64,000 nt of DNA, taken from assembly GCA_002269645.1 (NCBI GenBank), contig NIVC01000019.1, positions 992,001 to 1,056,000 on the forward strand. Direction: 5' to 3'. Below the pieces are notes generated by a model that was not told the DNA's origin, ran no database searches, and saw nothing but the letters and a program-made list of their open reading frames with translations. The DNA comes from Macrostomum lignano. Taxonomy: Eukaryota. The position numbers and the translations under genes are program-made. Shown one piece after another: positions 1 to 52,700 of the stretch (positions are counted from its first letter, which is position 1; each line of letters opens with the position of its first letter).

Positions 1-752
1 TCTTTTCAGTTTTGGCGCTTCTCTCTCTTTCTCTCTCTACAGTTTTGGCGCCTCACTCTACAGTTTTGGCGCCTTTCTCTCTACAGTTTTGGCGCCTTTC
101 TCTCTACAGTTTTGGCGCCTTTCTCTCTACAGTTTTGGCGCCTCTCTCTCTACAGTTTTGGCGCCTTTCTCTCTACAGTTTTGGCGCCTTTCTCTCTACA
201 GTTTTGGCGCCTCTCTCTACAGTTCTGGCGCCTCACTCTCTACAGCTTTGGCGCCTCTCTCTCTACAGTTTTGGCGCCTTTCTCTCTACAGTTTTGGCGC
301 CTCACTCTACAGTCTTGGCGCCTTTTTCTCTACAGTTTTGGCGCCTTTCCCTCTACAGTTCTGGCGCCTCATTCTACAGTTTTGGCGCCTCTCTCTCTAC
401 AGTTTTGGCGCCTTCATCTCTACAGTTTTGGCGCCTTTATCTCAACAGCTTTGGCGCCTCACTCTACAGTTTTGGCGCCTCTCTCTACAGTTTTGGCGCC
501 TCTCTCTCTACAGTTTTGGCGCCTTCATCTCTACAGTTTTGGCGCCTTTATCTCTACAGTTTTGGCGCCTCACTCTACAGTTTTGGCGCCTCTCTCTACA
601 GTTTTGGCGCCTTATCTCTACAGTTTTGGCGCCTTTCTCTCTACAGTTTTGGCGCCTTTCTCTCTACAGTTTTGGCGCCTTTCTCTCTACAGCTTTGGCG
701 CCTTTCTCTCTACCGTTTTGGCGCCTCTCCCTACAGTTTGGCGCCTTTTTCT
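1..752. repeat. Minisatellite, about 23-27 bp unit CTCTCTACAGTTTTGGCGCCT(TT)
   Basis: Tandem units visible directly; truncated by the window start. Confidence 0.95.
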
Positions 753-1489
753 ACTTTTATTGCAGAGAATTATTTACCCGATCAGTGCGACTTTCACATC
801 GATTTGAATCATTTGGTCTGTCTAAACAGGCTTGGACAATCATAGCGGTGGAACGCTGAACAGTCTGACAGTCAGGGGCCTCGGGCGGAATTTTCCAACA
901 ACGCCGAGAGCACCAGAGCCGAGTCTCCTCAACCCCTCGAGCAAAATTATCATCAGGTGTTAATTATAGAACAGCCCAACCGTGGAACGAGACAGAGTGC
1001 TACTAAGTGACTGGGGTTCCGCAATGTTTACTAAATAGAAATCCAATTCTCCAGTTTATCTGGGAGCTGCATTGCAGATCTTTTAGCCTTGAGAAGAGAT
1101 GGCGATCAGACCATAGGTGAGAGTGATTGTGCAAGGCTGAGATTGCAACGCTTTGATAGGCCCTGTTTAGTGTGAATAATTGATCTGATAAGGCAGTCTC
1201 AGTGGACACGGTCGTATTTATTAGACTCTTATCTGTTATCTGTGTCCTCTGTGTGTGATTGTTATGATCTCGGCGGCAAATATTGACTCATTTGGGCAGA
1301 CTCAATTATTCTGAGTAAGCCCCCCCCCTGCAAACCAGAGTATAGGCAATAGACAAGAGACCATTTATAAAAAAACAACAAAACAGAGACTTAGCACTCA
1401 TATTTCAGAGCACCAATTTACCTGTTTAATTATTTTGCAAACGGCGTTTTATGATACAGACTTGATTTTGGCCTAGTAGGGTGTTGCGG

Positions 1490-1992
1490 GCGCCTGAAGG
1501 TCTGAGGAAGGTATTAGAGGCTCACTGAAGGAGATTTGAGGAAGATATTAGATTCTCATTGAAGGAGATCTGAAGGAGGTATTAGAGGCTCATTGAAGGA
1601 GACCTGAGGGGGGTATTAAAGGCTCATTAAAGGAGATCTAAGGGAGATATTAGAGGTTCATTGAAGGAGATCTGAGGGAGATATTAGAGGCCCCCTGAAG
1701 GAGATCTGAGGGGGGTATTAGGGCTCACTGAAGGAGATCTGAGGGGGTATTAGAGGCTCATTGAAGGAGATCTGAGGAAGATATTAGAGGCTCATTAAAG
1801 GAGATCTGAGGGAGATATTAGATTCTCATTGAAGAAGATCTGAAGGAGGTATTAGAGGCTCACTGAAGGAGACCTGAAGGAGGTATTAGAGGCTCACTGA
1901 AGGAGACCTGAAGGAGGTATTAGAGGCTCACTGAAGGAGACCTGAAGGAGGTATTAGAGGCTCACTGAAGGAGATCTGAGGGAGGTATTAGA
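1490..1992. repeat. Minisatellite, about 34 bp unit GAGGCTCACTGAAGGAGATCTGAGGGAGGTATTA
   Basis: About 14 diverged tandem units. Confidence 0.9.
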
Positions 1993-2397
1993 GACGACAT
2001 CTGCTTGAAGTTCTGCTCGTCCGAAATTTCTCTGGCGTCCGTCCAAGAGCACCGCAAATCAGAGGGGAAATTGTGTTTACCGGGTTTTCTACAGAGACAA
2101 AAAATATCCCGAATTCAGCTTGTAAAATAAGATAAGGCCGCCGTTAGGCCAAGGCATGGGAACAGAATTTCAGACAATTATCAATGAGCCGCATAATTCT
2201 TATCGGCGGGGGTCTGGGTGGCTACTGCGACAGAACAAGGAGCCTGCTTGTTAACAGTGTACAAGCTATACGATATTCTTGAGTTGACTTCCTGAATTAC
2301 TTTATTTTTTTGTTTTGATCACAAGAGACAGCTGATATGCGTGGGTGGCCGCAGTTGCATTTTAAAGGTTACTGTAACATTATCTATGAAATTTCCA

Positions 2398-2648
2398 TGA
2401 AGATAGAAGATAGAAGATAGAAGACAGAAAGAAGATAAAAGATAGAAGGTAGAAGATAAAGATAGAAGATAGAAGAAGAAGATAGAAGATAGAAGATAGA
2501 AGATAGAAGATAGAAGATAGAAGATAGAAGATAGAAGACAGAAGATAGAAAACAGAAAATAGAAGATAGAAGACAGAAGATAGAAAACAGAAAATAGAAG
2601 ATAGAAGACAGAAGATAGAAGATAGAAGATAGAAGATAGAATATAGAA
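2398..2648. repeat. (GATAGAA)n microsatellite
   Basis: 7-bp tandem unit. Confidence 0.92.
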
Positions 2649-3008
2649 TATCAAAATTTTCCCCTTGCTTTGGCCAAAGACCGGAAGTGCGGGCTTGTAA
2701 AAAATATAACCCAGTGCTGGAACCTGCGGTCTGGACCATGCTGGGCCCAATGGAAGTCAAGGATATCCTCATTGAAGCTATACGATGAAGTTACTTTAGT
2801 ACATCTGCATTCTATTATTATAGGGTCTGTTTGTTAAAAGCAAAATATTAAATAGTGAATATAAATTCAGCGTATAAATTCAGTAAATCTTCAGTTTATG
2901 CAACTAGGTTTTCTAATATTATCTGCAATTCACTGAAGCTTTGTTCAGTGAAATTAATCTTTCTCTTTAGCTGTGATCGTTGGTGGGTCCAGGTGACTTA
3001 CCGAAATA

Positions 3009-4808
3009 TGGCACCCTCAGATTGGCGCCCTCAGATTGGCACCCTCAGATTGGCGCCCTCAGATTAGCACCCTCAGATTGGCGCCCTCAGATTGGCGCCC
3101 TCAAATTGACGCCCTCAGATTGACGCCCTCAGATTGGCGCCCTCAGATTGGCGCCCTCAGATTGACGCCCTCAGATTGGCACCCTCAGATTGGCGCCCTC
3201 AGATTGGTGCCCTCAGATTGACGCCCTCAGATTGGCGCCCTCAGATTGGTGCCCTCAGATTGGCACCCTCAGATTGGCGCCCTCAGATTGACGCCCTCAG
3301 ATTGGCGCCCTCAGATGGACGCCCTCAGATTGACGCCCTCAGATTGACGCCCTCAGATTGGCGCTCTCAGATTGACGCCCTCAGATTGACGCCCTCAGAT
3401 TGGCGCCCTCAGATTGGCGCCCTCAGATTGACGCCCTCAGATTGGCACCCTCAGATTGGTGCCCTCAGATTGGTGCCCTCAGATTGACGCCCTCAGATTG
3501 GCGCCCTCAGATGGACGCCCTCAGATTGGCGCCCTCAGATTGGCGCCCTCAGATTGACGCCCTCAGATTGGCACCCTCAGATTGGTGCCCTCAGATTGGT
3601 GCCCTCAGATTGACGCCCTCAGATTGGCGCCCTCAGATGGACGCCCTCAGATTGACGCCCTCAGATTGGCGCCCTCAGATTGGCGCCCTCAGATTGGCGC
3701 CCTCAGATTGACGCCCTCAGAGTGGCGCTCTCAGATTGACGCCCTCAGATTGACGCCCTCAGATTGGCGTCCTCAGATTGGCGCCCTCAGATTGGCGCCC
3801 TCAGAGTGGCGTCCTCAGATTGGCGCCCTCAGATAGGCGCCCTCAGATTGACGCCCTCAGATTGACGCCGTCAGATTGGCACCCTCAGATTGGCACCCTC
3901 AGATTGGCGCCCTCAGATTGACGCCCTCAGATTGGCGCCCTCAGATGGACGCCCTCAGATTGACGCCCTCAGATTGGCGCCCTCAGATTGGCGCCCTCAG
4001 ATTGGCGCCCTCAGATTGACGCCCTCAGAGTGGCGCTCTCAGATTGACGCCCTCAGATTGACGCCCTCAGATTGGCGTCCTCAGATTGGCGCCCTCAGAT
4101 TGGCGCCCTCAGAGTGGCGTCCTCAGATTGGCGCCCTCAGATAGGCGCCCTCAGATTGACGCCCTCAGATTGACGCCGTCAGATTGGCACCCTCAGATTG
4201 GCACCCTCAGATTGGCGCCCTCAGATTGACGCCCTCAGATTGGCGCCCTCAGATGGACGCCCTCAGATTGACGCCCTCAGATTGACGCCCTCAGAGTGGC
4301 GCTCTCAGATTGACGCCCTCAGATTGGCGCCCTCAGATTGGCGCCCTCAGATTGACGCCCTCAGATTGGCGCCCTCAGATTGGCGCCCTCAGATTGGCGC
4401 CCTCAGATTGGTGCCCTCAGATTGACGCCCTCAGATTGGCGCCCTCAGATGGACGCCCTCAGATTGACGCCCTCAGATTGGCGCCCTCAGATTGGCGCCC
4501 TCAGATTGGCGCCCTCAGATTGACGCTCTCAGATCGGCGCCCTCAGATTGACGCCCTCAGATTGACGCCCTCAGATTGGCGCCCTCAGATTGGCGCCCTC
4601 AGAGTGGCGTCCTTAGATTGGCGCCCTCAGATAGGCGCCCTCAGATTGACGCCCTCAGATTGACGCCCTCAGATTGGCACCCTCAGATTGGCACCCTCAG
4701 ATTGGCGCCCTCAGATTGGCGCCCTCAGATTGGCGCCCTCAGATTGACGCTCTCAGATCGGCGCCCTCAGATTGGCGCCCTCAGATTGACGCCCTCAGAT
4801 TGGCGCCT
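3009..4808. repeat. 14-bp minisatellite CAGATTGGCGCCCT, about 128 units, with a 308-bp higher-order period
   Basis: Tandem units; near-identical ORF translations recur at 3582, 3890 and 4198. Confidence 0.95.
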
Positions 4809-18505: not shown

Positions 18506-21500
18506 TCCGCCCTCTCCTCTCCCTCTCCGTCTCTCCCTCTCCGTCTCTCCCTCTCCGTCTCTCCCTCTCCGTCTCTCCCTCTCCGTCTCTCCCCTTCTGT
18601 GTCTCCCTCTCCGTCTCGCCCTCTCCGTCTCTCCCTCTCCGTCTCTCCCTCTCCGTCTCTCCCTCTCCGTCTCTCCCTCTCCGTCTCTCCCTCTCCGTCT
18701 CTCCCTCTCCGTCTCTCCCTCTCCGTCTCGCCCTCTCCGTCTCTCCCTCTCCGTCTCTCTCTCTCCGTCTCTCCCCTTCTGTGTCTCCCTCTCCGTCTCT
18801 CTCTCTCCGTCTCTCCCTCTCCGTTTCTCCCCTTCTGTGTCTCCCTCTCCATCTCGCCCTCTCCGTCTCTCCCTCTCCGTCTCTCTCTCTCCGTCTCTCC
18901 CCTTCTGTGTCTCCCTCTCCGTCTCTCTCTCTCCGTCTCTCCCTCTCCGTCTCTCCCTCTCCGTCTCTCCCCTTCTGTGTCTCCCTCTCCGTCTCTCCCC
19001 TTCTGTGTCTCCCTCTCCGTCTCGCCCTCTCCGTCTCTCCCTCTCCGTCTCTCTCTCTCCGTCTCTCCCCTTCTGTGTCTCCCTCTCCGTCTCGCCCTCT
19101 CCGTCTCTCCCTCTCCGTCTCTCTCTCTCCGTCTCTCCCCTTCTGTGTCTCCCTCTCCGTCTCTCCCCTTCTGTGTCTCCCTCTCCGTCTCGCCCTCTCC
19201 GTCTCTCCCTCTCCGTCTCTCTCTCTCCGTCTCTCCCTCTCCGTCTCTCCCTCTCCGTCTCTCCCTCTCCGTCTCTCCCTCTCCGTCTCGCCCTCTCCGT
19301 CTCTCCCCTTCTGTGTCTCCCTCTCCGTCTCGCCCTCTCCGTCTCTCCCTCTCCGTCTCTCTCTCTCCGTCTCTCCCCTTCTGTGTCTCCCTCTCCGTCT
19401 CGCCCTCTCCGTCTCTCCCTCTCCGTCTCTCCCCTTCTGTGTCTCCCTCTCCGTCTCTCCCCTTCTGTGTCTCCCTCTCCGTCTCGCCCTCTCCGTCTCT
19501 CCCTCTCCGTCTCTCTCTCTCCGTCTCTCCCTCTCCGTCTCTCCCTCTCCGTCTCTCCCTCTCCGTCTCGCCCTCTCTCGTCTCGCCCTCTCCGTCTCTC
19601 CCCTTCTGTGTCTCCCTCTCCGTCTCGCCCTCTCCGTCTCTCCCTCTCCGTCTCTCTCTCTCCGTCTCTCCCCTTCTGTGTCTCCCTCTCCGTCTCGCCC
19701 TCTCCGTCTCTCCCTCTCCGTCTCTCTCTCTCTCCGTCTCTCCCCTTCTGTGTCTCCCTCTCCGTCTCTCCCTCTTCTGTCTCCCTCTCCGTCTCTCCCT
19801 CTCCGTCTCTCCCCTTCTGTGTCTCCGTCTCCGTCTCGCCCTCTCCGTCTCTCCCTCTCCGTCTCTCTCTCTCCGTCTCTCCCTCTCCGTCTCTCCCCTT
19901 CTGTGTCTCCCTCTCCGTCTCGCCCTCTCCGTCTCTCCCTCTCCGTCTCTCTCTCTCCGTCTCTCCCCTTCTGTGTCTCCCTCTCCTCTCTCCCCTTCTG
20001 TGTCTCCCTCTCCGTCTCGCCCTCTCCGTCTCTCCCTCTCCGTCTCTCTCTCTCCGTCTCTCCCTCTCCGTCTCTCCCTCTCCGTCTCTCCCTCTCCGTC
20101 TCTCCCTCTCCGTCTCTCCCCTTCTGTGTCTCCCTCTCCGTCTCGCCCTCTCCGTCTCTCCCTCTCCGTCTCTCCCTCTCCGTCTCTCCCCTTCTGTGTC
20201 TCCCTCTCCGTCTCTCCCTCTCCGTCTCTCCCTTCTGTGTCTCCCTCTCCGTCTCGCCCTCTCCGTCTCTCCCTCTCCGTCTCTCTCTCTCCGTCTCTCC
20301 CCTTCTGTGTCTCCCTCTCCGTCTCTCCCCTTCTGTGTCTCCCTCTCCGTCTCGCCCTCTCCGTCTCTCCCTCTCCGTCTCTCCCTCTCCGTCTCTCCCC
20401 TTCTGTGTCTCCCTCTCCGTCTCTCCCTCTCCGTCTCTCCCCTTCTGTGTCTCCCTCTCCGTCTCGCCCTCTCCGTCTCTCCCTCTCCGTCTCTCTCTCT
20501 CCGTCTCTCCCTCTCCGTCTCTCCCTCTCCGTCTCTCCCTCTCCGTCTCTCCCTCTCCGTCTCTCCCCTTCTGTGTCTCCCTCTCCGTCTCTCCCTCTCC
20601 GTCTCTCCCCTTCTGTGTCTCCGTCTCCGTCTCGCCCTCTCCGTCTCTCCCTCTCCGTCTCTCTCTCTCCGTCTCTCCCTCTCCGTCTCTCCCTTCTGTG
20701 TCTCCCTCTCCGTCTCTCCCTCTCCGTCTCTCCCCTTCTGTGTCTCCCTCTCCGTCTCGCCCTCTCCGTCTCTCCCTCTCCGTCTCTCCCTCTCCGTCTC
20801 TCCCTCTCCGTCTCTCCCCTTCTGTGTCTCCCTCTCCGTCTCGCCCTCTCCGTCTCTCCCTCTCCGTCTCTCTCTCTCCGTCTCTCCCTCTCCGTCTCTC
20901 CCTCTCCGTCTCTCCCTCTCCGTCTCTCCCTCTCCGTCTCTCCCCTTCTGTGTCTCCCTCTCCGTCTCTCCCTCTCCGTCTCTCCCCTTCTGTGTCTCCC
21001 TCTCCGTCTCGCCCTCTCCGTCTCTCCCTCTCCGTCTCTCCCTCTCCGTCTCTCCCTCTCCGTCTCTCCCTCTCCGTCTCTCCCTTCTGTGTCTCCCTCT
21101 CCGTCTCTCCCTCTCCGTCTCTCCCCTTCTGTGTCTCCCTCTCCGTCTCGCCCTCTCCGTCTCTCCCTCTCCGTCTCTCTCTCTCCGTCTCTCCCTCTCC
21201 GTCTCTCCCCTTCTGTGTCTCCCTCTCCGTCTCTCCCCTTCTGTGTCTCCCTCTCCGTCTCGCCCTCTCCGTCTCTCCCTCTCCGTCTCTCTCTCTCCGT
21301 CTCTCCCCTTCTGTGTCTCCCTCTCCGTCTCGCCCTCTCCGTCTCTCCCTCTCCGTCTCTCTCTCTCCGTCTCTCCCCTTCTGTGTCTCCCTCTCCGTCT
21401 CTCCCCTTCTGTGTCTCCCTCTCCGTCTCGCCCTCTCCGTCTCTCCCTCTCCGTCTCTCTCTCTCCGTCTCTCCCTCTCCGTCTCTCCCTCTCCGTCTCT

Positions 21501-23907
21501 CCCTCTCCGTCTCTCCCTCTCCGTCTCGCCCTCTCCGTCTCTCCCCTTCTGTGTCTCCCTCTCCGTCTCGCCCTCTCCGTCTCTCCCTCTCCGTCTCTCT
21601 CTCTCCGTCTCTCCCCTTCTGTGTCTCCCTCTCCGTCTCGCCCTCTCCGTCTCTCCCTCTCCGTCTCTCCCCTTCTGTGTCTCCCTCTCCGTCTCTCCCC
21701 TTCTGTGTCTCCCTCTCCGTCTCGCCCTCTCCGTCTCTCCCTCTCCGTCTCTCTCTCTCCGTCTCTCCCTCTCCGTCTCTCCCTCTCCGTCTCTCCCTCT
21801 CCGTCTCTCCCTCTCCGTCTCGCCCTCTCCGTCTCTCCCCTTCTGTGTCTCCCTCTCCGTCTCGCCCTCTCCGTCTCTCCCTCTCCGTCTCTCTCTCTCC
21901 GTCTCTCCCCTTCTGTGTCTCCCTCTCCGTCTCGCCCTCTCCGTCTCTCCCTCTCCGTCTCTCTCTCTCTCCGTCTCTCCCCTTCTGTGTCTCCCTCTCC
22001 GTCTCTCCCCTTCTGTGTCTCCCTCTCCGTCTCTCCCTCTCCGTCTCTCCCCTTCTGTGTCTCCGTCTCCGTCTCGCCCTCTCCGTCTCTCCCTCTCCGT
22101 CTCTCTCTCTCCGTCTCTCCCTCTCCGTCTCTCCCCTTCTGTGTCTCCCTCTCCGTCTCGCCCTCTCCGTCTCTCCCTCTCCGTCTCTCTCTCTCCGTCT
22201 CTCCCCTTCTGTGTCTCCCTCTCCTTCTCTCCCCTTCTGTGTCTCCCTCTCCGTCTCGCCCTCTCCGTCTCTCCCTCTCCGTCTCTCTCTCTCCGTCTCT
22301 CCCTCTCCGTCTCTCCCTCTCCGTCTCTCCCTCCGTCTCTCCCTCTCCGTCTCTCCCCTTCTGTGTCTCCCTCTCCGTCTCGCCCTCTCCGTCTCTCCCT
22401 CTCCGTCTCTCCCTCTCCGTCTCTCCCCTTCTGTGTCTCCCTCTCCGTCTCTCCCTCTCCGTCTCTCCCCTTCTGTGTCTCCCTCTCCGTCTCGCCCTCT
22501 CCGTCTCTCCCTCTCCGTCTCTCTCTCTCCGTCTCTCCCCTTCTGTGTCTCCCTCTCCGTCTCTCCCCTTCTGTGTCTCCCTCTCCGTCTCGCCCTCTCC
22601 GTCTCTCCCTCTCCGTCTCTCCCTCTCCGTCTCTCCCCTTCTGTGTCTCCCTCTCCGTCTCTCCCTCTCCGTCTCTCCCCTTCTGTGTCTCCCTCTCCGT
22701 CTCGCCCTCTCCGTCTCTCCCTCTCCGTCTCTCTCTCTCCGTCTCTCCCTCTCCGTCTCTCCCTCTCCGTCTCTCCCTCTCCGTCTCTCCCTCTCCGTCT
22801 CTCCCCTTCTGTGTCTCCCTCTCCGTCTCTCCCTCTCCGTCTCTCCCCTTCTGTGTCTCCGTCTCCGTCTCGCCCTCTCCGTCTCTCCCTCTCCGTCTCT
22901 CTCTCTCCGTCTCTCCCTCTCCGTCTCTCCCCTTCTGTGTCTCCCTCTCCGTCTCTCCCTCTCCGTCTCTCCCCTTCTGTGTCTCCCTCTCCGTCTCGCC
23001 CTCTCCGTCTCTCCCTCTCCGTCTCTCCCTCTCCGTCTCTCCCTCTCCGTCTCTCCCCTTCTGTGTCTCCCTCTCCGTCTCGCCCTCTCCGTCTCTCCCT
23101 CTCCGTCTCTCTCTCTCCGTCTCTCCCTCTCCGTCTCTCCCTCTCCGTCTCTCCCTCTCCGTCTCTCCCTCTCCGTCTCTCCCCTTCTGTGTCTCCCTCT
23201 CCGTCTCTCCCTCTCCGTCTCTCCCCTTCTGTGTCTCCCTCTCCGTCTCGCCCTCTCCGTCTCTCCCTCTCCGTCTCTCCCTCTCCGTCTCTCCCTCTCC
23301 GTCTCTCCCTCTCCGTCTCTCCCCTTCTGTGTCTCCCTCTCCGTCTCTCCCTCTCCGTCTCTCCCCTTCTGTGTCTCCCTCTCCGTCTCGCCCTCTCCGT
23401 CTCTCCCTCTCCGTCTCTCTCTCTCCGTCTCTCCCTCTCCGTCTCTCCCCTTCTGTGTCTCCCTCTCCGTCTCTCCCTCTCCGTCTCTCCCCTTCTGTGT
23501 CTCCCTCTCCGTCTCTCTCTCTCCGTCTCTCCCTCTCCGTCTCTCCCTCTCCGTCTCTCCCCTTCTGTGTCTCCCTCTCCGTATCTCCCCTTCTGTGTCT
23601 CCCTCTCCGTCTCGCCCTCTCCGTCTCTCCCTCTCCGTCTCTCCCCTTCTGTGTCTCCCTCTCCGTCTCTCTCTCTCCGTCTCTCCCTCTCCGTCTCTCC
23701 CTCTCCGTCTCTCCCCTTCTGTGTCTCCCTCTCCGTCTCTCCCCTTCTGTGTCTCCCTCTCCGTCTCGCCCTCTCCGTCTCTCCCCTTCTGTGTCTCCCT
23801 CTCCGTCTCGCCCTCTCCGTCTCTCCCTCTCCGTCTCTCCCTCTCCGTCTCTCCCTCTCCGTCTCTCCCCTTCTGTGTCTCCCTCTCCGTCTCTCCCTCT
23901 CCGTCTC
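18506..23907. repeat. 5.4-kb pyrimidine-rich satellite, 14-bp CTCCCTCTCCGTCT with a 16-bp variant CTCCCCTTCTGTGTCT
   Basis: Continuous tandem array with long internal duplications. Confidence 0.97.
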
Positions 23908-29720: not shown

Positions 29721-42071
<12,351 letters not shown>

Positions 42072-43691: not shown

Positions 43692-43873
43692 CTAGTATTG
43701 ATCAACATTGAGCACCAGATTGCCCAGCCCGTCATCTGTCGAGTAGGCCTCCTCGGCCACCTCAGCGTTTGCTTCGCCCGGCAGCGACACCATGGAGCTC
43801 TGCGTGCCAAAGGCCACCCGGCTGAAGATGCTGCGCCGCGTCTTCAGGACTTTGTGCTTGTTGGCTGGCGGGC
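43692..43873 (-). CDS. NPC1: NPC1 alternative terminal exon 10B (GPPANKHKVLKTRRSIF..NVDQY*)
   Basis: Strong pyrimidine tract plus CAG, phase 1, GC-rich island; GPPANKHK resembles the GPSVNKAK that follows LSYI in vertebrate NPC1. Confidence 0.7.
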
Positions 43874-43889
43874 CTGCGATGGGAAGGGT

Positions 43890-44795
43890 TGAGGGAGTGA
43901 GGCGGATGTGGAGTGAGGTGGGTGTGCGGAGTGAGGCGGATGTGGAGTGAGGGGGGTGTGCGGAGTGAGGTGGTTGTGGAGTGAGATGGGTGTGAGAGTG
44001 AGGTGGGTGTGAGAGTGAGGTAGGTGTGAGAGTGAGGTGGGTGTGAGAGTGAGGTGGATTTGGAGTGAGGTGAATGTGAGAGTGAGGTGGTTGCGGAGTG
44101 AGGTGGATGTGGAGTGAGGTGGGTGTAGAGTGAGGTGGTTGTGGAGTGAGGTGGGTGTAGAGTGAGGTGGTTGTGGAGTGAGGTGGTTGTGGAGTGAGGT
44201 GGGTGTGGAGTGAGGTGGGTGTGGAGTGAGGTGGGTGTGGAGTGAGGTGGGTGTGGAGTGAGGTGGGTGTGGAGTGCGGTGGGTGTGGAGTGAGGTAGGA
44301 GTGGAGTGAGGTGGGGTACAGAGTAAGATGGGTGTGCAGAGTGAGGCGGGTGTGGAGTGAGGTGGGTGTGGAGTGCGGTGGGTGTGGAGTGAGCTGGGTG
44401 TGAGAATGAGCTGGGTGTGAGAGTGAATTGGGTGTGAAAGTGAGGTGGGTGTGAGAGTGAGCTGGGTGTGAGAGTGAGTTGGGTGTGAGTGACTTGGGTG
44501 TGAGAGTGAGGTGGGTGTGAGAGTGAGTTGGGTGTGAGAGTGAGTTGGGTGTGAGTGAGTTGGGTGTGAGAGTGAGTTGGGTGTGAGAGTGAGTTGGGTG
44601 TGAGAGTGAGTTGGGTGTGAGAGTGAGTTGGGTGTGAGAGTGAGTTGGGTGTGAGAGTGAGTTGGGTGTGAGAGTGAGCTGGGTGTGAGAGTGAGTTGGG
44701 TGTGAGAGTGAGTTGGGTGTGAGAGTGAGCTGGGTGTGAGAGTGAGTTGGGTGTGAGAGTGAGGTGGGTGTGAAAGTGAGGTGGGTGTGGAGTGA
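43890..44795. repeat. GT-rich repeat GGAGTGAGGTGGGTGT / GAGAGTGAGTTGGGTGT
   Basis: 16-17 bp units. Confidence 0.9.
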
Positions 44796-45594
44796 CAAAT
44801 TTTTCAGTTGAAGTTTTTCATTTTTAATCGCCTTAGTTACAATGTAGAACTTACAATTAAAAAAATTACATGTACGATGTACCTGTAGGAAACCTAAATG
44901 CTTTCACATACTAAATAATACTGAGAACCTACGTAACAAATTCGATAATAAATTAGCTGTCAAAATCAAGGTGTGCAAATCAAGCGCTGCGCTTATAATC
45001 AAGCAGTGTTAACCTCCTTTAACCGTACTTAAAAATCGAAGCAAAGGCGCCAAGACAATTCAGGATTAAAAATTAAAAATTAATGTGATGATGCCTGTAA
45101 TGCTCTTATGCATAACACATGTACTTGATATTGTTTAAAGGTCGAACTTACTATTAATGAGACAGCTGACAATCGAAATTTACTGCTTAAAATCTGAGTC
45201 GGATAAATATTCTTAATAGGCTGGGCATAAAATTGTATTTAATTTTTATAAATGTCTCATAGAGCATGAGAGAATTAATATTAAAATGCGCGAACAATGC
45301 GGTAACTTCGTTCCATCATTAACACAAAACTGGAGGAAAGCGAGCGGTAGGCAGATGCATCATGGCTGGGATAGCAGTTCTTTGCGGCTGCTTTAAATTC
45401 ATGATTTATTACTGGGAATAAATAATTCATATCACACTATATATATTAGGTTGTTGATCCGTAATAAATGTTAGATCCAATATCCGGCACTTGTGAAATT
45501 TTTCAGATGCAAAAATCAGAGACTGAGATGGAGATAGAAAATACTCGTAGGTAATGAGATGGATAGAAATTGAAATATTATAAAATGGAATGAA

Positions 45595-46190
45595 TATGAG
45601 ATGAGAGACATAGAATATGGAGATAGGAGAGATAGACTATGAGATGAGAGAGATAGAATATGGAGATATGAGAGATAGACTTTGAGATGAGAGAGATAGA
45701 ATATGGAGACAGGAGAGATTGACTTTGAGATGAGAGAGATAGAATATGGAGATAGGACAGATAGACTATGAGATGAGAGAGATAGAATATGGAGACAGGA
45801 GAGATTGACTTTGAGATGAGAGAGATAGAATATGGAGATAGGACAGATAGACTATGAGATGAGAGAGATAGAATATGGAGATAGGAGAGAGAGACTATGA
45901 GATGAGAGAGATAGAATATGGAGACAGGAGAGATTGACTTTGAGATGAGAGAGATAGAATATGGAGATAGGACAGATAGACTATGAGATGAGAGAGATAG
46001 AATATGGAGATAGGAGAGAGAGACTATGAGATGAGAGAGATAGAATATGGAGATAGGACAGATAGACTATGAGATGAGAGAGATAGAATATGGAGACAGG
46101 AGAGATTGACTTTGAGATGAGAGAGATAGAATATGGAGATGAGAGAGATAGAATATGAGATGAGAGAGATAGACGGTGAGATGGAAGGTG
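45595..46190. repeat. 43-bp purine-rich minisatellite GAGATGAGAGAGATAGAATATGGAGATAGGAGAGATAGACTAT
   Basis: About 13 units. Confidence 0.92.
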
Positions 46191-46474
46191 AGATGAGAAA
46201 AGAACGTGCACAAAGAGAAGCAAAGAAAGGTGACAAGTGCCAGACAGAACACTCAAATTAAATACGTGCAAAGCGAAATTTTTACGAGAAAAAAGACAGC
46301 AATAATCTTGCAGTACTACTGAGGCTCGAGTAGAGTGAACTGATAATTAACAATCGAGAAATATGAAGCAGATTTCTGTCTGGACACAGCAAACCATTAC
46401 AAAATAGATGGGGGGCATACAATATAATAAAAAAGGAATATAAAATCTACAATAATCGATATTGTGCAATTGGC

Positions 46475-46480
46475 TTTAAT
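46475..46480 (-). terminator. Candidate polyadenylation signal (ATTAAA) after NPC1 exon 10A
   Basis: ATTAAA on the minus strand about 130 nt after the stop. Confidence 0.35.
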
Positions 46481-46610
46481 AGTGAGAGGAGTTCACAAAG
46501 GTCACTTCTGTAAACCAACAGGTCCAATCAGATTGGCAAGATTCAACGGAGTCTACAGTTTCTTATTTGAGTAGTTTCACAGATTCCGCCCCACTCGGGC
46601 CTCATCATTT

Positions 46611-46705
46611 TCAGCTCCTGGACTCGCCGCCGCTGCTGTCCTCCGCCTCTTCAAGCAGGCCGTAGCGCCGTCGCCTCCTCAGGCGGCCCCCGGTGCCCGC
46701 TGGTC
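46611..46705 (-). CDS. NPC1: NPC1 terminal exon 10A ([31 protein letters not shown])
   Basis: CTAAC branch-like motif, CAG acceptor, phase 1, GC-rich island, TGA stop, ATTAAA about 130 nt downstream. Confidence 0.65.
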
Positions 46706-49700
46706 CTGTTTTTTCGCATTGTTAGTTATTTGAGATAATCGATTAGCATCTCAATCAGGGCTGACAATCAGAACGAAAAATAGCCAACAAATCAAAACGT
46801 TGATAAAATGCTAACTAAATTCAATCTTGGCGGTTATTGCATTTTAATTTTTCTCATATAATGTCGCCGCTGCAGAAATATAAATTGTTTCATTTCGCGT
46901 CACGCTACTTACAGTACACTAAATAGCGTATGTTAGATTTTTTAATTTAACGATTTTATCCATCTTTTATAGTGGAATAAAAAAGATTTGAGGGACTAAC
47001 TGATCCCGATTGAATCTGGGACTGATTTGGGACTAACTGATCCCGATTGAATCTGGGACTGATTGTGGGACTAACTGATCCCGATTGAATCTGGGACTGA
47101 TTGTGGGACTAACTGATCCCGATTGAATCTGGGACTGATTGTGGGACTAACTGATCCCGATTGAATCTGGGACTGATTCGGGACCAACTATCCCGATTGA
47201 ATCTGGGACTGATTGTGGGACTAACTGATCCCGATTGAATCTGGGACTGATTGTGGGACTAACTGATCCCGATTGAATCTGGGACTGATTGTGGGACTAA
47301 CTGATCCCGATTGAATCTGGGACTGATTGTGGGACTAACTGATCCCGATTGAATCTGGGACTGATTCGGGACCAACTATCCCGATTGAATCTGGGACTGA
47401 TTGTGGGACTAACTGATCCCAAATAAACTAAATTTTCGATACATATCGGCATAACTCACCGACATAGCTGAGCAGCACAGGCAGGAACACGAGGCCGTGC
47501 AGGGCTCCGAACAGCACAATGCCCAGGTACATGCGGAAGTAGAAAATTTTGAACAGCTGGGATTTGGCAAAACCGAGGATCACAATGCCGCCCAGCTTGG
47601 TGAGGGTGATGCCGGAGAACACGGAGCTGCCCATATGGACAAAACTGTCCCGAGCTCTGGCCAGCCGGCTGGTCTCCTTGGAGACGGCGAAAGCACGGAC
47701 CAGGTGCGAGCAGAACTCCACCGAGATGCCCACGGTCTGGGGGGTTGGGGGTCAGAGGGGTCGACATTTCAACAATGATAATCATCATTTCAACCATGAT
47801 AATCATCATTTTAAGCATGAAAATCATCATTTCAACCATAACAATCATCATTTTAACCATGATAATCATCATTTCAACAATGATAATCATCATTTCAACA
47901 ATGATAATCATCATTTCAACGATGATTTTCATCATTATCAACAATCACAATCATCATTTTAACTATCACTATCAGCATTTAAACAATGATAATAATCATT
48001 TCAATAATAATAATCATCATTTTAAGCATGAAAATCATCATTTCAAACATGAAAATCATCATTTCAACCATGACAATCATCATTTCAACCATGATAATCA
48101 TAATTTTAAGATTGAAAATCATCATTTCAACCATGATAATCATCATTTAAGCATGATAATAATTATTTCAACAATGAAAATAATCATTTCAACCATGATA
48201 ATCATCATTTTAAGCATGATAATAATTATTTCAACAATGAAAATAATCATTTCAACCATGATAATCATCATTTTAAGCATGATAATCATTATTTCAACCA
48301 TGACAATAATCATTCCAACAATGATAATCATCAATTCAACGATGATATTCATCATTATCAACAATCACAATCGTCATTTTAACTATCACTATCAATATTT
48401 AAACAATGATAATAATCCTTTCAATAATAATAACCATCATTTTAACAATGACAATCATCATTTTAACAGTCATAATCATCATTTTAACAACCATGATAAG
48501 CGATAGGCATCTTTAAAAAGCTAGGATAAATGGTTTTTCTTTCATCAACGTTGCAGCTGTGAAAATCACTATATCAACCACAAAATGAATACTAAAAAAG
48601 TAACGAGTGTTAAAAACGTAACAAAACCAATAGCGGCAGTTTGAGCAGCTTGAAACACGCACGCTAGCACTAATTTCATTTCAGTGCCAGGCAGTGCTAA
48701 GAGAATATGTTTCAATTTGACCCGAAATAAAGTGCATATAGCATTAGAATTGGCTACATTTCCCTGATAAGCAATGTCACGCTATAACTCATATAGGCCC
48801 TGCAGTGCCTGACTTGACCTATGGATTGTGAACATTCAACCTGGGCATTTCATTGCGCAGTCCAGTCACGCCAGTTACTTATCGGAGACTATGCTACTTC
48901 ATTTTTGGTGTTCCAATTTTAATTTTCCTCGCCCTAACTTTCTAGAACTGTTTTTATAATCTCATAAATCAGGGCAGTGTTGGTTGATTAAAGTGTGCCA
49001 ATGCACTTTTCTCAAGTTAAAGTACATGCCGTGAATGACGACTATACCAATATATATCCACATCGCTACCCACAGACACGGTGTCCAGGCTACCCACAGA
49101 CACAGAGTCCAGGCTACTCACAGACACAGTGTCTAGGCTACCCACAGACATAGTATCCAGGCTACCCACAGACAGTATCCAGGCTATCCACACCGTGTCC
49201 AGGCTACCCACAGACACAGTGTCCAGGCTACCCACAGACACAGAGTCTAGGCTACCCACAGACACAGTGTCTAGGCTACCCACAGACAGTATCCAGGCTA
49301 TCCACACTGTCCAGGCTACCCACAGACATAGTATCCAGGCTACCCACAGACAGTATCCAGGCTACCCACAGACACATTGTCTAGGCTACCCACAGACACA
49401 TTGTCTAGGCTACCCACAGACATAGTATCCAGGCTACCCACAGACACAGTGTCTAGGCTACCCACAGATAGTATCCAGGCTACCCACAGACAGTATCCAG
49501 GCTACCCACAGACACATTGTCTAGGCTACCCACAGACATAGTATCCAGGCTACCCACAGACACAGTGTCCAGGCTACCCACAGACACAGTATCCAGGCTA
49601 CCCACAGAGACAGTATCCAGGCTACCCACAGAGACAGTATCCAGGCTACCCACAGAGACAGTATCCAGGCTACCCACAGAGACAGTATCCAGGCTACCCA

Positions 49701-52700
49701 CAGACACAGTATCCAGGCTACCCACAGACACAGTATCCAGGCTACCCACAGACAGTGTCCAGGCTACCCACAGACACAGTATCCAGGCTACCCACAGACA
49801 CAGTATCCAGGCTACCCACAGACAGTGTCCAGGCTACCCACAGACACAGTGTCTAGGCTACCCACAGACACAGTGTCTAGGCTACCCACAGTATCCAGGC
49901 TACCATCGCTCACCATGACGAGGTTCACCAGTGACACAGCGTTAAGCGTGATATCCCAGAAGTACATGAAGCCAAGCATGGAGTTGAGAATCAGGCCGAT
50001 GGTGAGCAGTATGATGCAGGTGGAGAACAGGTCGAATCCAAGCAGGATGAAGGTCACAACGCCGATAGCGGCAACGCAGATTGACAGGTTGACAACCGTG
50101 TCGTGCACAATGGTCAGGTATTGCTCGTAGAATACATAGAACACGCTGTACGGGAATACATTGATCTCCCTGGCAACAATTCGGTTGGAGGGTTGATCGA
50201 TTTAGAAGCATGCAGACAAAGCGGGACTAACTGATCCCGAATGAATCTGGGACTGATTGCGGGACTAACTGATCCCGAATGAATCTGGGACTGATTGCGG
50301 GACTAACTGATCCCGAATGAATCTGGGACTGATTGCGGGACTAATCCAATGAATCTGGAACTGACTGCGGGACTAACTGATCCCGAATGAATCTGGGACT
50401 GACTGCGGGACTAACTGATCCCGAATGAATCTGGGACTGATTGCGGGACTAATCCAATGAATCTGGGACTGATTGCGGGACTAACTGATCCCGAATGAAT
50501 CTGGGACTGACTGCGGGACTGAACCAATGAATCTGGGACTGACTGCGGGACTAACCCAATGAATCTGGGACTGATTGCAGGACTAACCCAATGAATCTGG
50601 GACTCAAATACAATAAAATACACAAATAACTCACTTTGATTGAGTAACATTCTCAAAGTACTCATTAATATCGTCAGTCATTTTAATAGCCATCTTGTAG
50701 GCGTTAATAAAATCGTCGCCGGTCCTGAGCACGGAGTGGTAGGTCATGTAGTAGGAGGCGGTCACTGCCCCGGTGGCGTTGGACCTCGCTATGGCCGTAG
50801 CGTAGGCGGCGTGTCCGCCTTTGGCGCAGGCGGGCCCGGGGTTGTCCATGAGGAAATAGTCCAGGTAGCGGTAGAACTCCGACTGCACTGGCCGGCCGTC
50901 TGAAGTGAAATTCACGTTGCAGGAGACGCAGTCGGTGGCCGAGCTGGTGGCCGGACAGAAGCCGCCGGAGCCGGCCGTGTGATAGCGGCAGCAGGGCGGG
51001 TGTCCGCTTGGGTCCAGCCAGTCCACATAGTCGTCAAACCAGGAGCTGGGCGGGCTAACAATATAGGAATAGGTTGGAATCTCGGACATCTGGGACAGCT
51101 GGCCGACCATGGACTTCTGTGGACAGCCGGCCCGGCTGCACACCAGGTTCTGCTGGCTGGGATCCGAGTAGTCCAGCGGGCCGCGAACTACAAAGTAGAC
51201 GGGCGGCCCGACGCTCAAATACCGCTTGATGCCGTCGAAATAGTCGATCACGTAGCTGTCCTCGGGCATGCTGAGCTCCTGGTCCAGGCCTACTCGGACA
51301 TTGTGCACCGAGGCCAGGCACAGGCAGGCCCAGCCGGTGAACAGCAGGATAACAAACGGCCGGACCCAGGATTGGAACAGCACAGCCGATATGTAGCGCT
51401 TGAATAGTTGGAATAGCAAGCCGCTGTTGTTGCTGTTAGATTGCGCAGAGTCCGGATTCGAGTCCAGGATCTCACGCGGAAGCTGCTGTTGCTGATGCTG
51501 CGCGGCCTGCTCATCCTTGGACGCCAGCAGGCAGCAGAGAACGTCCGGCCTGCCGGCTGCCTGACGCCTAGCGTCCAGCGACAGCAGCGCCACGAAGCAG
51601 CTGATCTGCAGCAGGAAGTCCACCAGCACGGCCATGCCAGCGTACAGGGCGAACACGCGGACGGCCGGCATGGAGGTCAGGGCGCCAAAGAAGAAGGCCA
51701 CGGACTCGCTCAGGCTGCTCAGCAGCATGCTGGGCCCCACGCTGCCCACTGAGCGGGCGATCCGGGCCTGTGGGGGAACAGCTGAAGGGCTTGAGATCCT
51801 GTCTAGATTCTAAATGACCCCACTATCTAGATCCTAAATGACCACCCTATCTAGATCCTAAATGACCACCCTATCTAGATCCTAAATGACCACCCTATCT
51901 AGATCCTAAATGACCACCCTATCTAGATCCTAAATGACCACCCTATCTAGATCCTAAATGACCCTCTTAGTTCTAGATCCAAAATGACCACCCTATCTAG
52001 ATCCTAAATGACCACCCTATCTAGATCCTAAATGACCACCCACCTAGTTCTAGATACTAAATGACCCCCCTAGTTCTAGATACCAAATGCCCCCCCCCCT
52101 AGTTCTAGATACTAAATTACCACCTACCCTAGTTCTAGATACTAAATTACCACCCCCCTAGTTCTAGATACTTAACTACCACCCATCCTAGTTCTAGATA
52201 CTAAATTACCACCCATCCTAGTTCTAGATACTAAATTACCACCCATCCTAGTTCTAGATACTAAATTACCACCTACCCTAGTTCTAGATACTAAATTACC
52301 ACCCACCCTAGTTCTAGATACTAAATTACCACCCCCCTAGTTCTAGATACTAAATGACCACCCACCCTACTTCTAGATACTAAATGACCACCCACCCTAG
52401 TTCTAGATACTAAATGCCCCCCCCCCTAGTTCTAGATACTAAATTACCACCCACCCTAGTTCTAGATACTAAATTACCACCCACCTAGTTCTAGATACTA
52501 AATTACCACCCACCCTACTTCTAGATACTAAATTACCACCCACCCTAGTTCTAGATACTTAACTACCACCCCCCTAGTTCTAGATACTAAATTACCACCT
52601 ACCCTAGTTCTAGATACTTAACTACCACCCACCTAGTTCTAGATACTAAATTACCACCTACCCTAGTTCTAGATACTAAATTACCACCCCCCCCTAGTTC

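Follow-up and report, generated by a model that had tools for sequence, protein, structure and literature searches.

The NPC1 gene of the free-living flatworm Macrostomum lignano probably possesses two alternative last exons, a proximal new exon (10A) and a distal ancestral one (10B), which would give two proteins with different tails. The gene lies on the minus strand of a 64,000-nucleotide (nt) stretch of contig NIVC01000019.1 (positions 992,001 to 1,056,000), called the window here, to which coordinates refer unless stated otherwise. An earlier note on this DNA, made from the letters alone, had proposed that exon 9 is joined to one or the other of two GC-rich islands, each encoding its own cytoplasmic tail. 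The particulars on which it relied were all confirmed in the sequence: exon 9 ends in phase 1 at 47460, CAG acceptors stand at 46705 and 43873, and the reading frames, the Gly-Pro starts and the stop codons are as described. Its assignment of both islands to the NPC1 tail also stands; 10A is the annotated C-terminus in two copies of the gene, and 10B is ancestral, intact, conserved and transcribed.

Two candidate last exons of NPC1

The 3' end of the gene comprises the following features.

47736-47460, minus strand: exon 9, encoding the last transmembrane segments; phase-1 end after LLSYV-G
46988-47420, no strand assigned: 38-bp minisatellite, 11.5 copies, filling most of the interval between exon 9 and 10A
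46730-46706, minus strand: acceptor region of 10A, aataACTAACaatgcgaaaaaacag, running up to the splice point, with a branch-point-like ACTAAC ~17 nt from the AG
46705-46611, minus strand: exon 10A, acceptor aaaaaacag/GA, 31 codons including the split Gly, with a TGA that ends at 46611
46567-46562 (AATAAG) and 46480-46475 (ATTAAA), minus strand: hexamers resembling poly(A) signals, at +44 and +131 after the 10A stop
45595-46173, no strand assigned: 43-bp minisatellite, 13.5 copies, between 10A and 10B
43895-44795, no strand assigned: 17-bp minisatellite, 54 copies, stopping 22 nt short of the 10B acceptor
43873-43692, minus strand: exon 10B, acceptor ccatcgcag/GC within a strong acceptor region, cccttcccatcgcag, with a TAG that ends at 43692
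43691-43292, minus strand: block after the 10B stop conserved by between-copy divergence, a candidate 3' untranslated region (3'UTR)

Exon 9 ends in CTC AGC TAT GTC G/gtgagt at 47460, and this donor is common to both candidate last exons. A phase-1 intron after LLSY(I/V)G is widely conserved, across animals as well as in two older NPC1 paralogues of M. lignano. Many database fragments from other animals are genomic read-throughs at exactly the exon 9 junction, continuing as GE... or GK..., the translated gtgag or gtaag. An open reading frame (ORF) in phase 1 behind an AG is unremarkable in this region because the minisatellites are often open: of the AG sites between the exon 9 donor and a point ~500 nt beyond the stop of 10B (47459-43200), 62 are followed by an ORF of 25 or more codons, and these ORFs end at 31 different stops. 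For example, the 17-bp minisatellite is open for ~400 codons in the 10B frame, which is a chance ORF. A naive ORF finder accordingly reports a 403-amino acid (aa) "protein" at 44903-43695 (minus strand), ending at the 10B stop, a repeat artefact.

The ORF criterion is thus not what counts here; 10A and 10B exceed chance by base composition, codon usage and external evidence. The GC-rich islands of the earlier note were borne out, with a GC content of 0.74 for the 10A island and 0.61 for the 10B island versus about 0.35-0.45 for the introns. Third-position GC is enriched in both islands, and the proposed frame is the sole open frame in each. Opposite-strand genes were considered as the cause of the GC islands and rejected; a convincing plus-strand ORF lies over neither.

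Tail A is the exact C-terminus of the GenBank protein PAA93975.1 (P0157), and the GenBank gene ends at 10A. A second copy of the gene on another contig, encoding PAA75929.1 (P0277), also ends in the 31-residue tail A. The GenBank annotation was taken from NIVC01000019.1 (assembly Mlig_3_7, GCA_002269645.1), which matches with 100% identity over 27.4 kb. Its gene models are StringTie and TACO assemblies of RNA sequencing (RNA-seq) data merged with a de novo transcriptome; the models were trimmed at poly(A) and spliced-leader sites located by experiment, and ORFs were called with TransDecoder (PMC5730564). The exon 9-to-10A junction is supported indirectly, through these RNA-seq-based models of two copies, and 10A is a real exon, the annotated C-terminus in both.

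The polypyrimidine tract of 10A is the weakest in the NPC1 gene (0.29 versus 0.47-0.88). Its AG and the ACTAAC are kept in the second copy, which has AATAAA in place of AATAAG at +44 after the 10A stop; the ATTAAA is present in both copies. A usable donor after the 10A stop was not found: the best candidate for a 10A-to-10B splice scores at most 5.7, versus 7.6-10.6 for the eight real donors, and none lies near the stop. Therefore 10A is a terminal exon rather than a cassette, and 10A and 10B would be mutually exclusive terminal exons if both are used. For the same reason, 10A as a cassette exon or a poison exon was rejected. Of the mutual exclusivity that the earlier note proposed, the terminal nature of 10A is upheld and a junction between exon 9 and 10B was not seen.

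Exon 10B encodes (G)PPANKHKVLKTRRSIF...NLVLNVDQY followed by a stop, a tail of 60 aa whose start is also given as GPPANKHKVLKTRRSIF. GenBank carries a separate 57-aa, 5'-partial coding sequence (CDS) at 43865-43692, which reproduces tail B exactly except for the first three residues and shares its frame and stop codon. This CDS forms part of an evidence-based annotation, and RNA evidence therefore covers 10B; that is, 10B is transcribed on the NPC1 strand.

The two tails were compared with those of other animals. The spliced tails of vertebrates, echinoderms, molluscs, nematodes, insects and parasitic flatworms start P-x-x-N-(K/R)-x-(K/R)-(L/V). Tail B has this juxtamembrane motif directly after LLSY[IV]G (PPANKHKVLK) and tail A does not (PAGTGGRLR). 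Similar starts include PSVNKAK, PGINKAKL, PSLNKQKVLQR (a metagenome fragment) and PVSKHRQIVRK (the paralogue P0158). The resemblance of tail B to the vertebrate GPSVNKAK, pointed out in the earlier note, is thus real. Past ~17 residues, a detectable relative of tail B outside M. lignano was not found. Judged by the tail start, 10B is the ancestral NPC1 last exon; tail B is of the canonical NPC1 type and tail A falls outside that type.

Divergence, origin and alternatives

The two gene copies were compared by MAFFT global alignment. Non-repeat introns served as the neutral yardstick; they are usable as such because their 5.4% difference between copies matches the synonymous rate. The constitutive exons differ by 1.83%, with 56 synonymous and 12 non-synonymous codon changes. 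Exon 10B is identical at 178/182 nt, has no indel, and keeps its acceptor, frame and stop. Divergence is 2.2% in the 10B CDS, 3.1% in the next 400 nt and 6.9% beyond. Taken together, 10B and the 400 nt differ by 2.8% (16/566) versus 5.4% in the non-repeat introns (p = 0.007), about half the neutral rate. The second copy also has a 34-nt insertion just 5' of the 10B polypyrimidine tract (~22700-22733 of its locus) that carries an extra CTGCAG; the acceptor proper is the same.

Codon scores, computed against the NPC1 gene's own exons in bits per codon, are 0.30 for 10B in frame versus -0.76 and -0.90 in the other frames; exons 3-9 score 0.27-0.47. The GC content of 10B at codon positions 1/2/3 is 0.62/0.42/0.78, versus 0.53/0.41/0.76 in the core CDS. 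For 10A the score is an intermediate 0.00 in frame versus -0.65 and -0.73 in the other frames. Between copies 10A differs at 6/95 nt (6.3%), with three amino-acid changes, which is about neutral. Five of the six changes fall in the first 35 nt, and the distal 51 nt (17 residues) together with the next 33 nt show one synonymous change only. This pattern fits a young exon consisting of a loosely constrained linker followed by 17 invariant residues.

The neutral overall divergence of 10A, its codon score and its weak acceptor would also be expected if 10B were the principal functional last exon, and the 10A mRNA were a by-product of transcripts cleaved and polyadenylated too early, inside the intron, and had been kept by the annotation pipeline; 10B is, furthermore, the conserved, orthologous tail. 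This explanation is nevertheless quite improbable. The pipeline, which retains the major isoform and cuts at measured poly(A) sites, arrived at 10A separately for each of the two copies. The near-invariant distal part of 10A, and the preservation of its frame, AG and ACTAAC, also speak against a by-product.

An A-like exon is absent from the two older M. lignano paralogues, each of which has one last exon after the same intron. An origin of 10A as a transposon fragment or a copy of other sequence was rejected, no second match being present in the window or in the four loci. Since it is unique in the window and the four loci, and absent from both paralogues, 10A is apparently a lineage-specific exon born from unique intronic sequence. 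The tail B start is found across animals and in the two older paralogues. The note had assigned no polarity to the pair. The new-looking tail A turns out to be the annotated one, and the canonical-looking tail B the unconfirmed one.

A course of events leading to two tails can be proposed. The ancestral gene would have had a single short last exon, now 10B, separated by the phase-1 intron from the sequence encoding the last transmembrane helix. This last intron would have grown to 3.6 kb in the present NPC1 lineage by means of minisatellite arrays, and 10A would have arisen within the grown intron from unique sequence, equipped with an acceptor AG, a stop codon and ATTAAA/AATAAG signals of its own. 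Pairing of the exon 9 donor with the 10A acceptor, followed by proximal cleavage, would produce NPC1 with tail A, the annotated and apparently major form. Whenever the weak 10A acceptor is skipped, the polymerase would continue for 2.7 kb and exon 9 would pair with the strong 10B acceptor, producing NPC1 with tail B. We infer the use of the exon 9-to-10B junction, the ratio of the isoforms and any difference in protein sorting.

Several observations weigh against the production of tail B: i) evidence for an exon 9-to-10B junction was not found, 10B being represented only by the 57-aa CDS, which is unlinked to NPC1; ii) this CDS begins 8 nt inside 10B (43865), a start that coincides with neither the acceptor AG of 10B nor the CAG that comes next, is compatible with neither cis- nor trans-splicing, and lies near the point at which the 17-bp array gives way to unique sequence; iii) an unlinked island of coverage, such as read-through or a long 3'UTR, would account for the CDS no less well than a spliced isoform does; iv) the canonical AATAAA and ATTAAA are absent within 700 nt of 10B, where the only hexamer resembling a poly(A) signal is AATAAC at 43626-43621 (+66); v) tail B on an NPC1 body was not found among proteins of ~68-208 aa or of at least ~800 aa, intermediate sizes being outside the search; vi) the 10B CDS taken alone differs from the introns marginally (p = 0.059), and its changes, three non-synonymous and one synonymous, give no signal of purifying selection at the protein level; and vii) an unused 10B ORF could stay intact by chance, at a rough estimate of ~1 in 4, because the copies are only ~5.5% diverged at neutral sites.

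Such a picture would suit the replacement of one exon by the other, which we regard as possible though not probable. Here 10A would be the sole coding last exon and 10B a recent relic lying in read-through transcripts or in a long 3'UTR produced by tandem alternative polyadenylation, and the protein would always carry tail A. The annotated proteins of both copies carry only tail A, and the TACO setting used, --isoform-frac 0.75, retains the dominant isoform in the models (PMC5730564). After the exon 9-to-10A splice there is no donor with which to reach 10B, and read-through would give just the unlinked 10B CDS, with its non-splice start near the end of the 17-bp array, that GenBank records. 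The condition of 10B argues the other way, since it keeps a strong acceptor, an open frame, exon-like codons and an approximately half-neutral divergence in both copies. Since no acceptor in the gene is weaker than that of 10A, part of the splicing can be expected to bypass it in favour of the strong acceptor of 10B. In addition, a purely untranslated role leaves the in-frame ancestral PPANKHKVLK unexplained. On these grounds true alternative last exons are the better account.

GenBank lists 10B as a separate gene, and trans-splicing is common in M. lignano, affecting ~39% of the genes, with several genes per precursor possible (PMC5730564). It could thus be asked whether 10B is part of a downstream transcript of its own, trans-spliced to a spliced leader or else non-coding, and has no connection with the NPC1 protein. 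We consider this highly improbable. The only start codon in the 10B ORF is an internal Met, from which a product of 33 aa would result. The ORF continues exon 9 exactly in frame, and homology to NPC1 tails extends over its first 10-17 residues. The start of the 57-aa CDS matches neither nearby AG; a spliced-leader acceptor at 10B as the source of this CDS was rejected for that reason. The earlier note had also allowed for splicing of the 10B island into another gene; none is called within 7 kb downstream of 10B on the GenBank record.

Further searches bear on the distribution of tail B. An exhaustive HMMER search of cluster representatives with tail B alone yielded only the GenBank 57-aa fragment and a spurious bacterial repeat protein (P0291), with no further relative of tail B. 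A lookup of the 57-aa product on other contigs found the GenBank record only. Exact scans of metagenome contigs for the exon 9-to-10B junction were empty; the exon 9-to-10A positive control was empty too, and these scans are hence uninformative.

Gene model and genome setting

The NPC1 gene consists of 10 exons on the minus strand. Every junction follows the GT-AG rule, and the reading frame is free of internal stops. The exons upstream of exon 9 are as follows.

60137-60078, minus strand: exon 1, with the ATG and a 20-residue signal peptide, donor gtaagt; matches the N-terminus of P0157
59944-59756, minus strand: exon 2
58881-58396, minus strand: exon 3
57034-56532, minus strand: exon 4
55471-54928, minus strand: exon 5
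54245-53805, minus strand: exon 6
51767-50635, minus strand: exon 7
50169-49914, minus strand: exon 8

The model built from the window and the GenBank protein PAA93975.1 agree with 0 mismatches, the sole difference being a 35-aa gap in the GenBank record. The 35 conserved residues missing from PAA93975.1 (51224-51120, inside exon 7) are present in the window and in the protein of the second copy. The gap is probably an artefact of the transcript model because its boundaries are not GT-AG. Precomputed Pfam assignments for P0157 are NPC1_N (PF16414), NPC1_MLD (PF22314), Sterol-sensing (PF12349) and Patched (PF02460), and the protein is 42-47% identical over 96% of its length to the NPC1 proteins of molluscs, echinoderms and vertebrates. 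By domain content and similarity, the minus-strand gene is a bona fide member of the NPC1 family. At its 5' end, a good acceptor (ctttttacag/, 60141-60137 region) lies 3 nt 5' of the NPC1 ATG and may be a site of spliced-leader trans-splicing. Both GenBank NPC1 proteins, one from each copy, are 5'-partial at the NPC1 start.

The M. lignano genome is repeat-rich and recently duplicated (PMC5730564, PMC10468722). Tandem repeats make up 49.9% of the window, and the NPC1 introns are crowded with minisatellites. One minisatellite family occurs in two of these introns (46988-47420 and 50240-50587); its unit, approximately GGGACTAACTGATCCCGAWTGAATCTGGGACTGATTG, contains the branch-point-like ACTAAC. 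Very large tandem arrays occupy 18517-23907 (5.4 kb of a 14/28-nt unit, with A absent on the plus strand), 32493-37136 (4.6 kb of a 25-mer) and 40184-40912 (a perfect (AGTC) x 182). Fragments of an ionotropic glutamate receptor (iGluR)-like gene at 38643-42068 on the plus strand are oriented convergently with the 3' end of NPC1. One ORF among them (38643-39488, plus strand) matches Pfam Lig_chan over the cut-off (E = 8e-13, 48.8 bits), and GenBank has no gene call at these fragments. A second iGluR gene is found on the same contig just past the other end of NPC1, at 1-4208 of the examined contig piece.

Sorting motifs and known alternative tails

Both tails are predicted to be cytosolic extensions past the last transmembrane helix. 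The motifs that the earlier note reported are present, as far as sequence matches go. Tail A contains a YGLL (YxxPhi) at residue 15, an Arg run with several RxR, and an acidic/Ser cluster with a CK2-type site, all of which the second copy keeps without change. In tail B an LL/LI pair, a YxxPhi, an Arg run and an acidic cluster are all absent, and the only conserved element there is the juxtamembrane PxxNKxK. The acidic di-leucine [DE]xxxL[LI], exemplified by ERERLL of human NPC1, is present in neither; in tail A, RRYGLL has Arg at -4. Moreover, the C-terminal di-leucine of human NPC1 has been reported to be insufficient for targeting to late endosomes and lysosomes (PMC12772203, citing Scott et al. 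2004). The hypothesis of the earlier note, that tail choice would separate lysosomal export from surface uptake, is partly weakened by this motif content. An Arg-based endoplasmic reticulum-retrieval role for tail A may be entertained equally with the lysosome-surface idea.

A wider proposal is that one NPC1 gene toggles between the ancestral tail and a new tail with YGLL, Arg-rich (RxR-type) and CK2-like acidic elements, sending the same sterol-transporting core to different compartments or tissues, the new tail having been born de novo from an intron. We think this rather unlikely as a whole. If true, a task that in other animals is divided among paralogues such as NPC1 and NPC1L1 would here fall to one gene, and the de novo birth of a cytoplasmic sorting tail out of an intron would have been caught in progress. 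Should both tails be made, the locus would serve as a compact natural experiment on the way in which transporters of the NPC1 family are directed by their C-terminal tails, and as a case in which a new terminal exon inside a repeat-expanded intron overtakes the ancestral one. Production of tail A alone would make it a tidy case of terminal-exon turnover. M. lignano, with its three NPC1 lineages, is a transgenic model tractable by RNA interference.

Either way the gene architecture is of a known type and current understanding is unchallenged. Both exons are already in GenBank, which splits off the ancestral last exon as a 57-aa "hypothetical protein" and so mislabels it as a separate gene product; the identity of this product as NPC1 exon 10B corrects the annotation. 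Literature searches on the gene identifiers and on NPC1 alternative last exons returned nothing relevant, and a description of the locus was not found.

A close comparison is with the tail exon of NPC1 and NPC1L1 in humans and other animals, which likewise follows a phase-1 intron after LLSY(I/V)G. Tail B shares with it the P-x-x-N-K-x-K-(V/L); it differs in being 60 aa long and in lacking the [DE]xxxL[LI] or YxxPhi, whereas tail A has only the Gly-Pro start in common with the canonical tails. The paralogues Mlig025683 (P0158) and Mlig006344 (P0159) resemble the gene described here in their domains, in the position and phase of the last intron, and in possessing short, B-like basic tails. They differ in that they are 61-63% identical, have a single last exon each, preceded by an intron that measures 0.24 kb in one paralogue and 1.1 kb in the other, and have no A-like exon. 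Variation of the NPC1 tail by 3' end processing is annotated elsewhere, in the NPC1-like X2 and X3 of Wasmannia auropunctata and in the NPC1 isoforms of Pan troglodytes. The W. auropunctata tails have their first 29 residues in common and diverge distally, whereas the M. lignano tails differ from the second residue past the junction.

Alternative last exons and intronic polyadenylation are well established in membrane proteins, with one donor serving two terminal exons that each have their own acceptor and stop. The proximal exon of such genes sits inside what is otherwise the last intron, and the choice alters only the cytoplasmic C-terminus and the 3'UTR. The M. lignano gene departs from these known cases in that only its proximal junction is transcript-supported, its distal poly(A) hexamer is non-canonical and its intron is dominated by minisatellites. 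It agrees with them in having two AG acceptors in compatible phase, each followed by an in-frame stop, and both are kept in the second copy of the gene.

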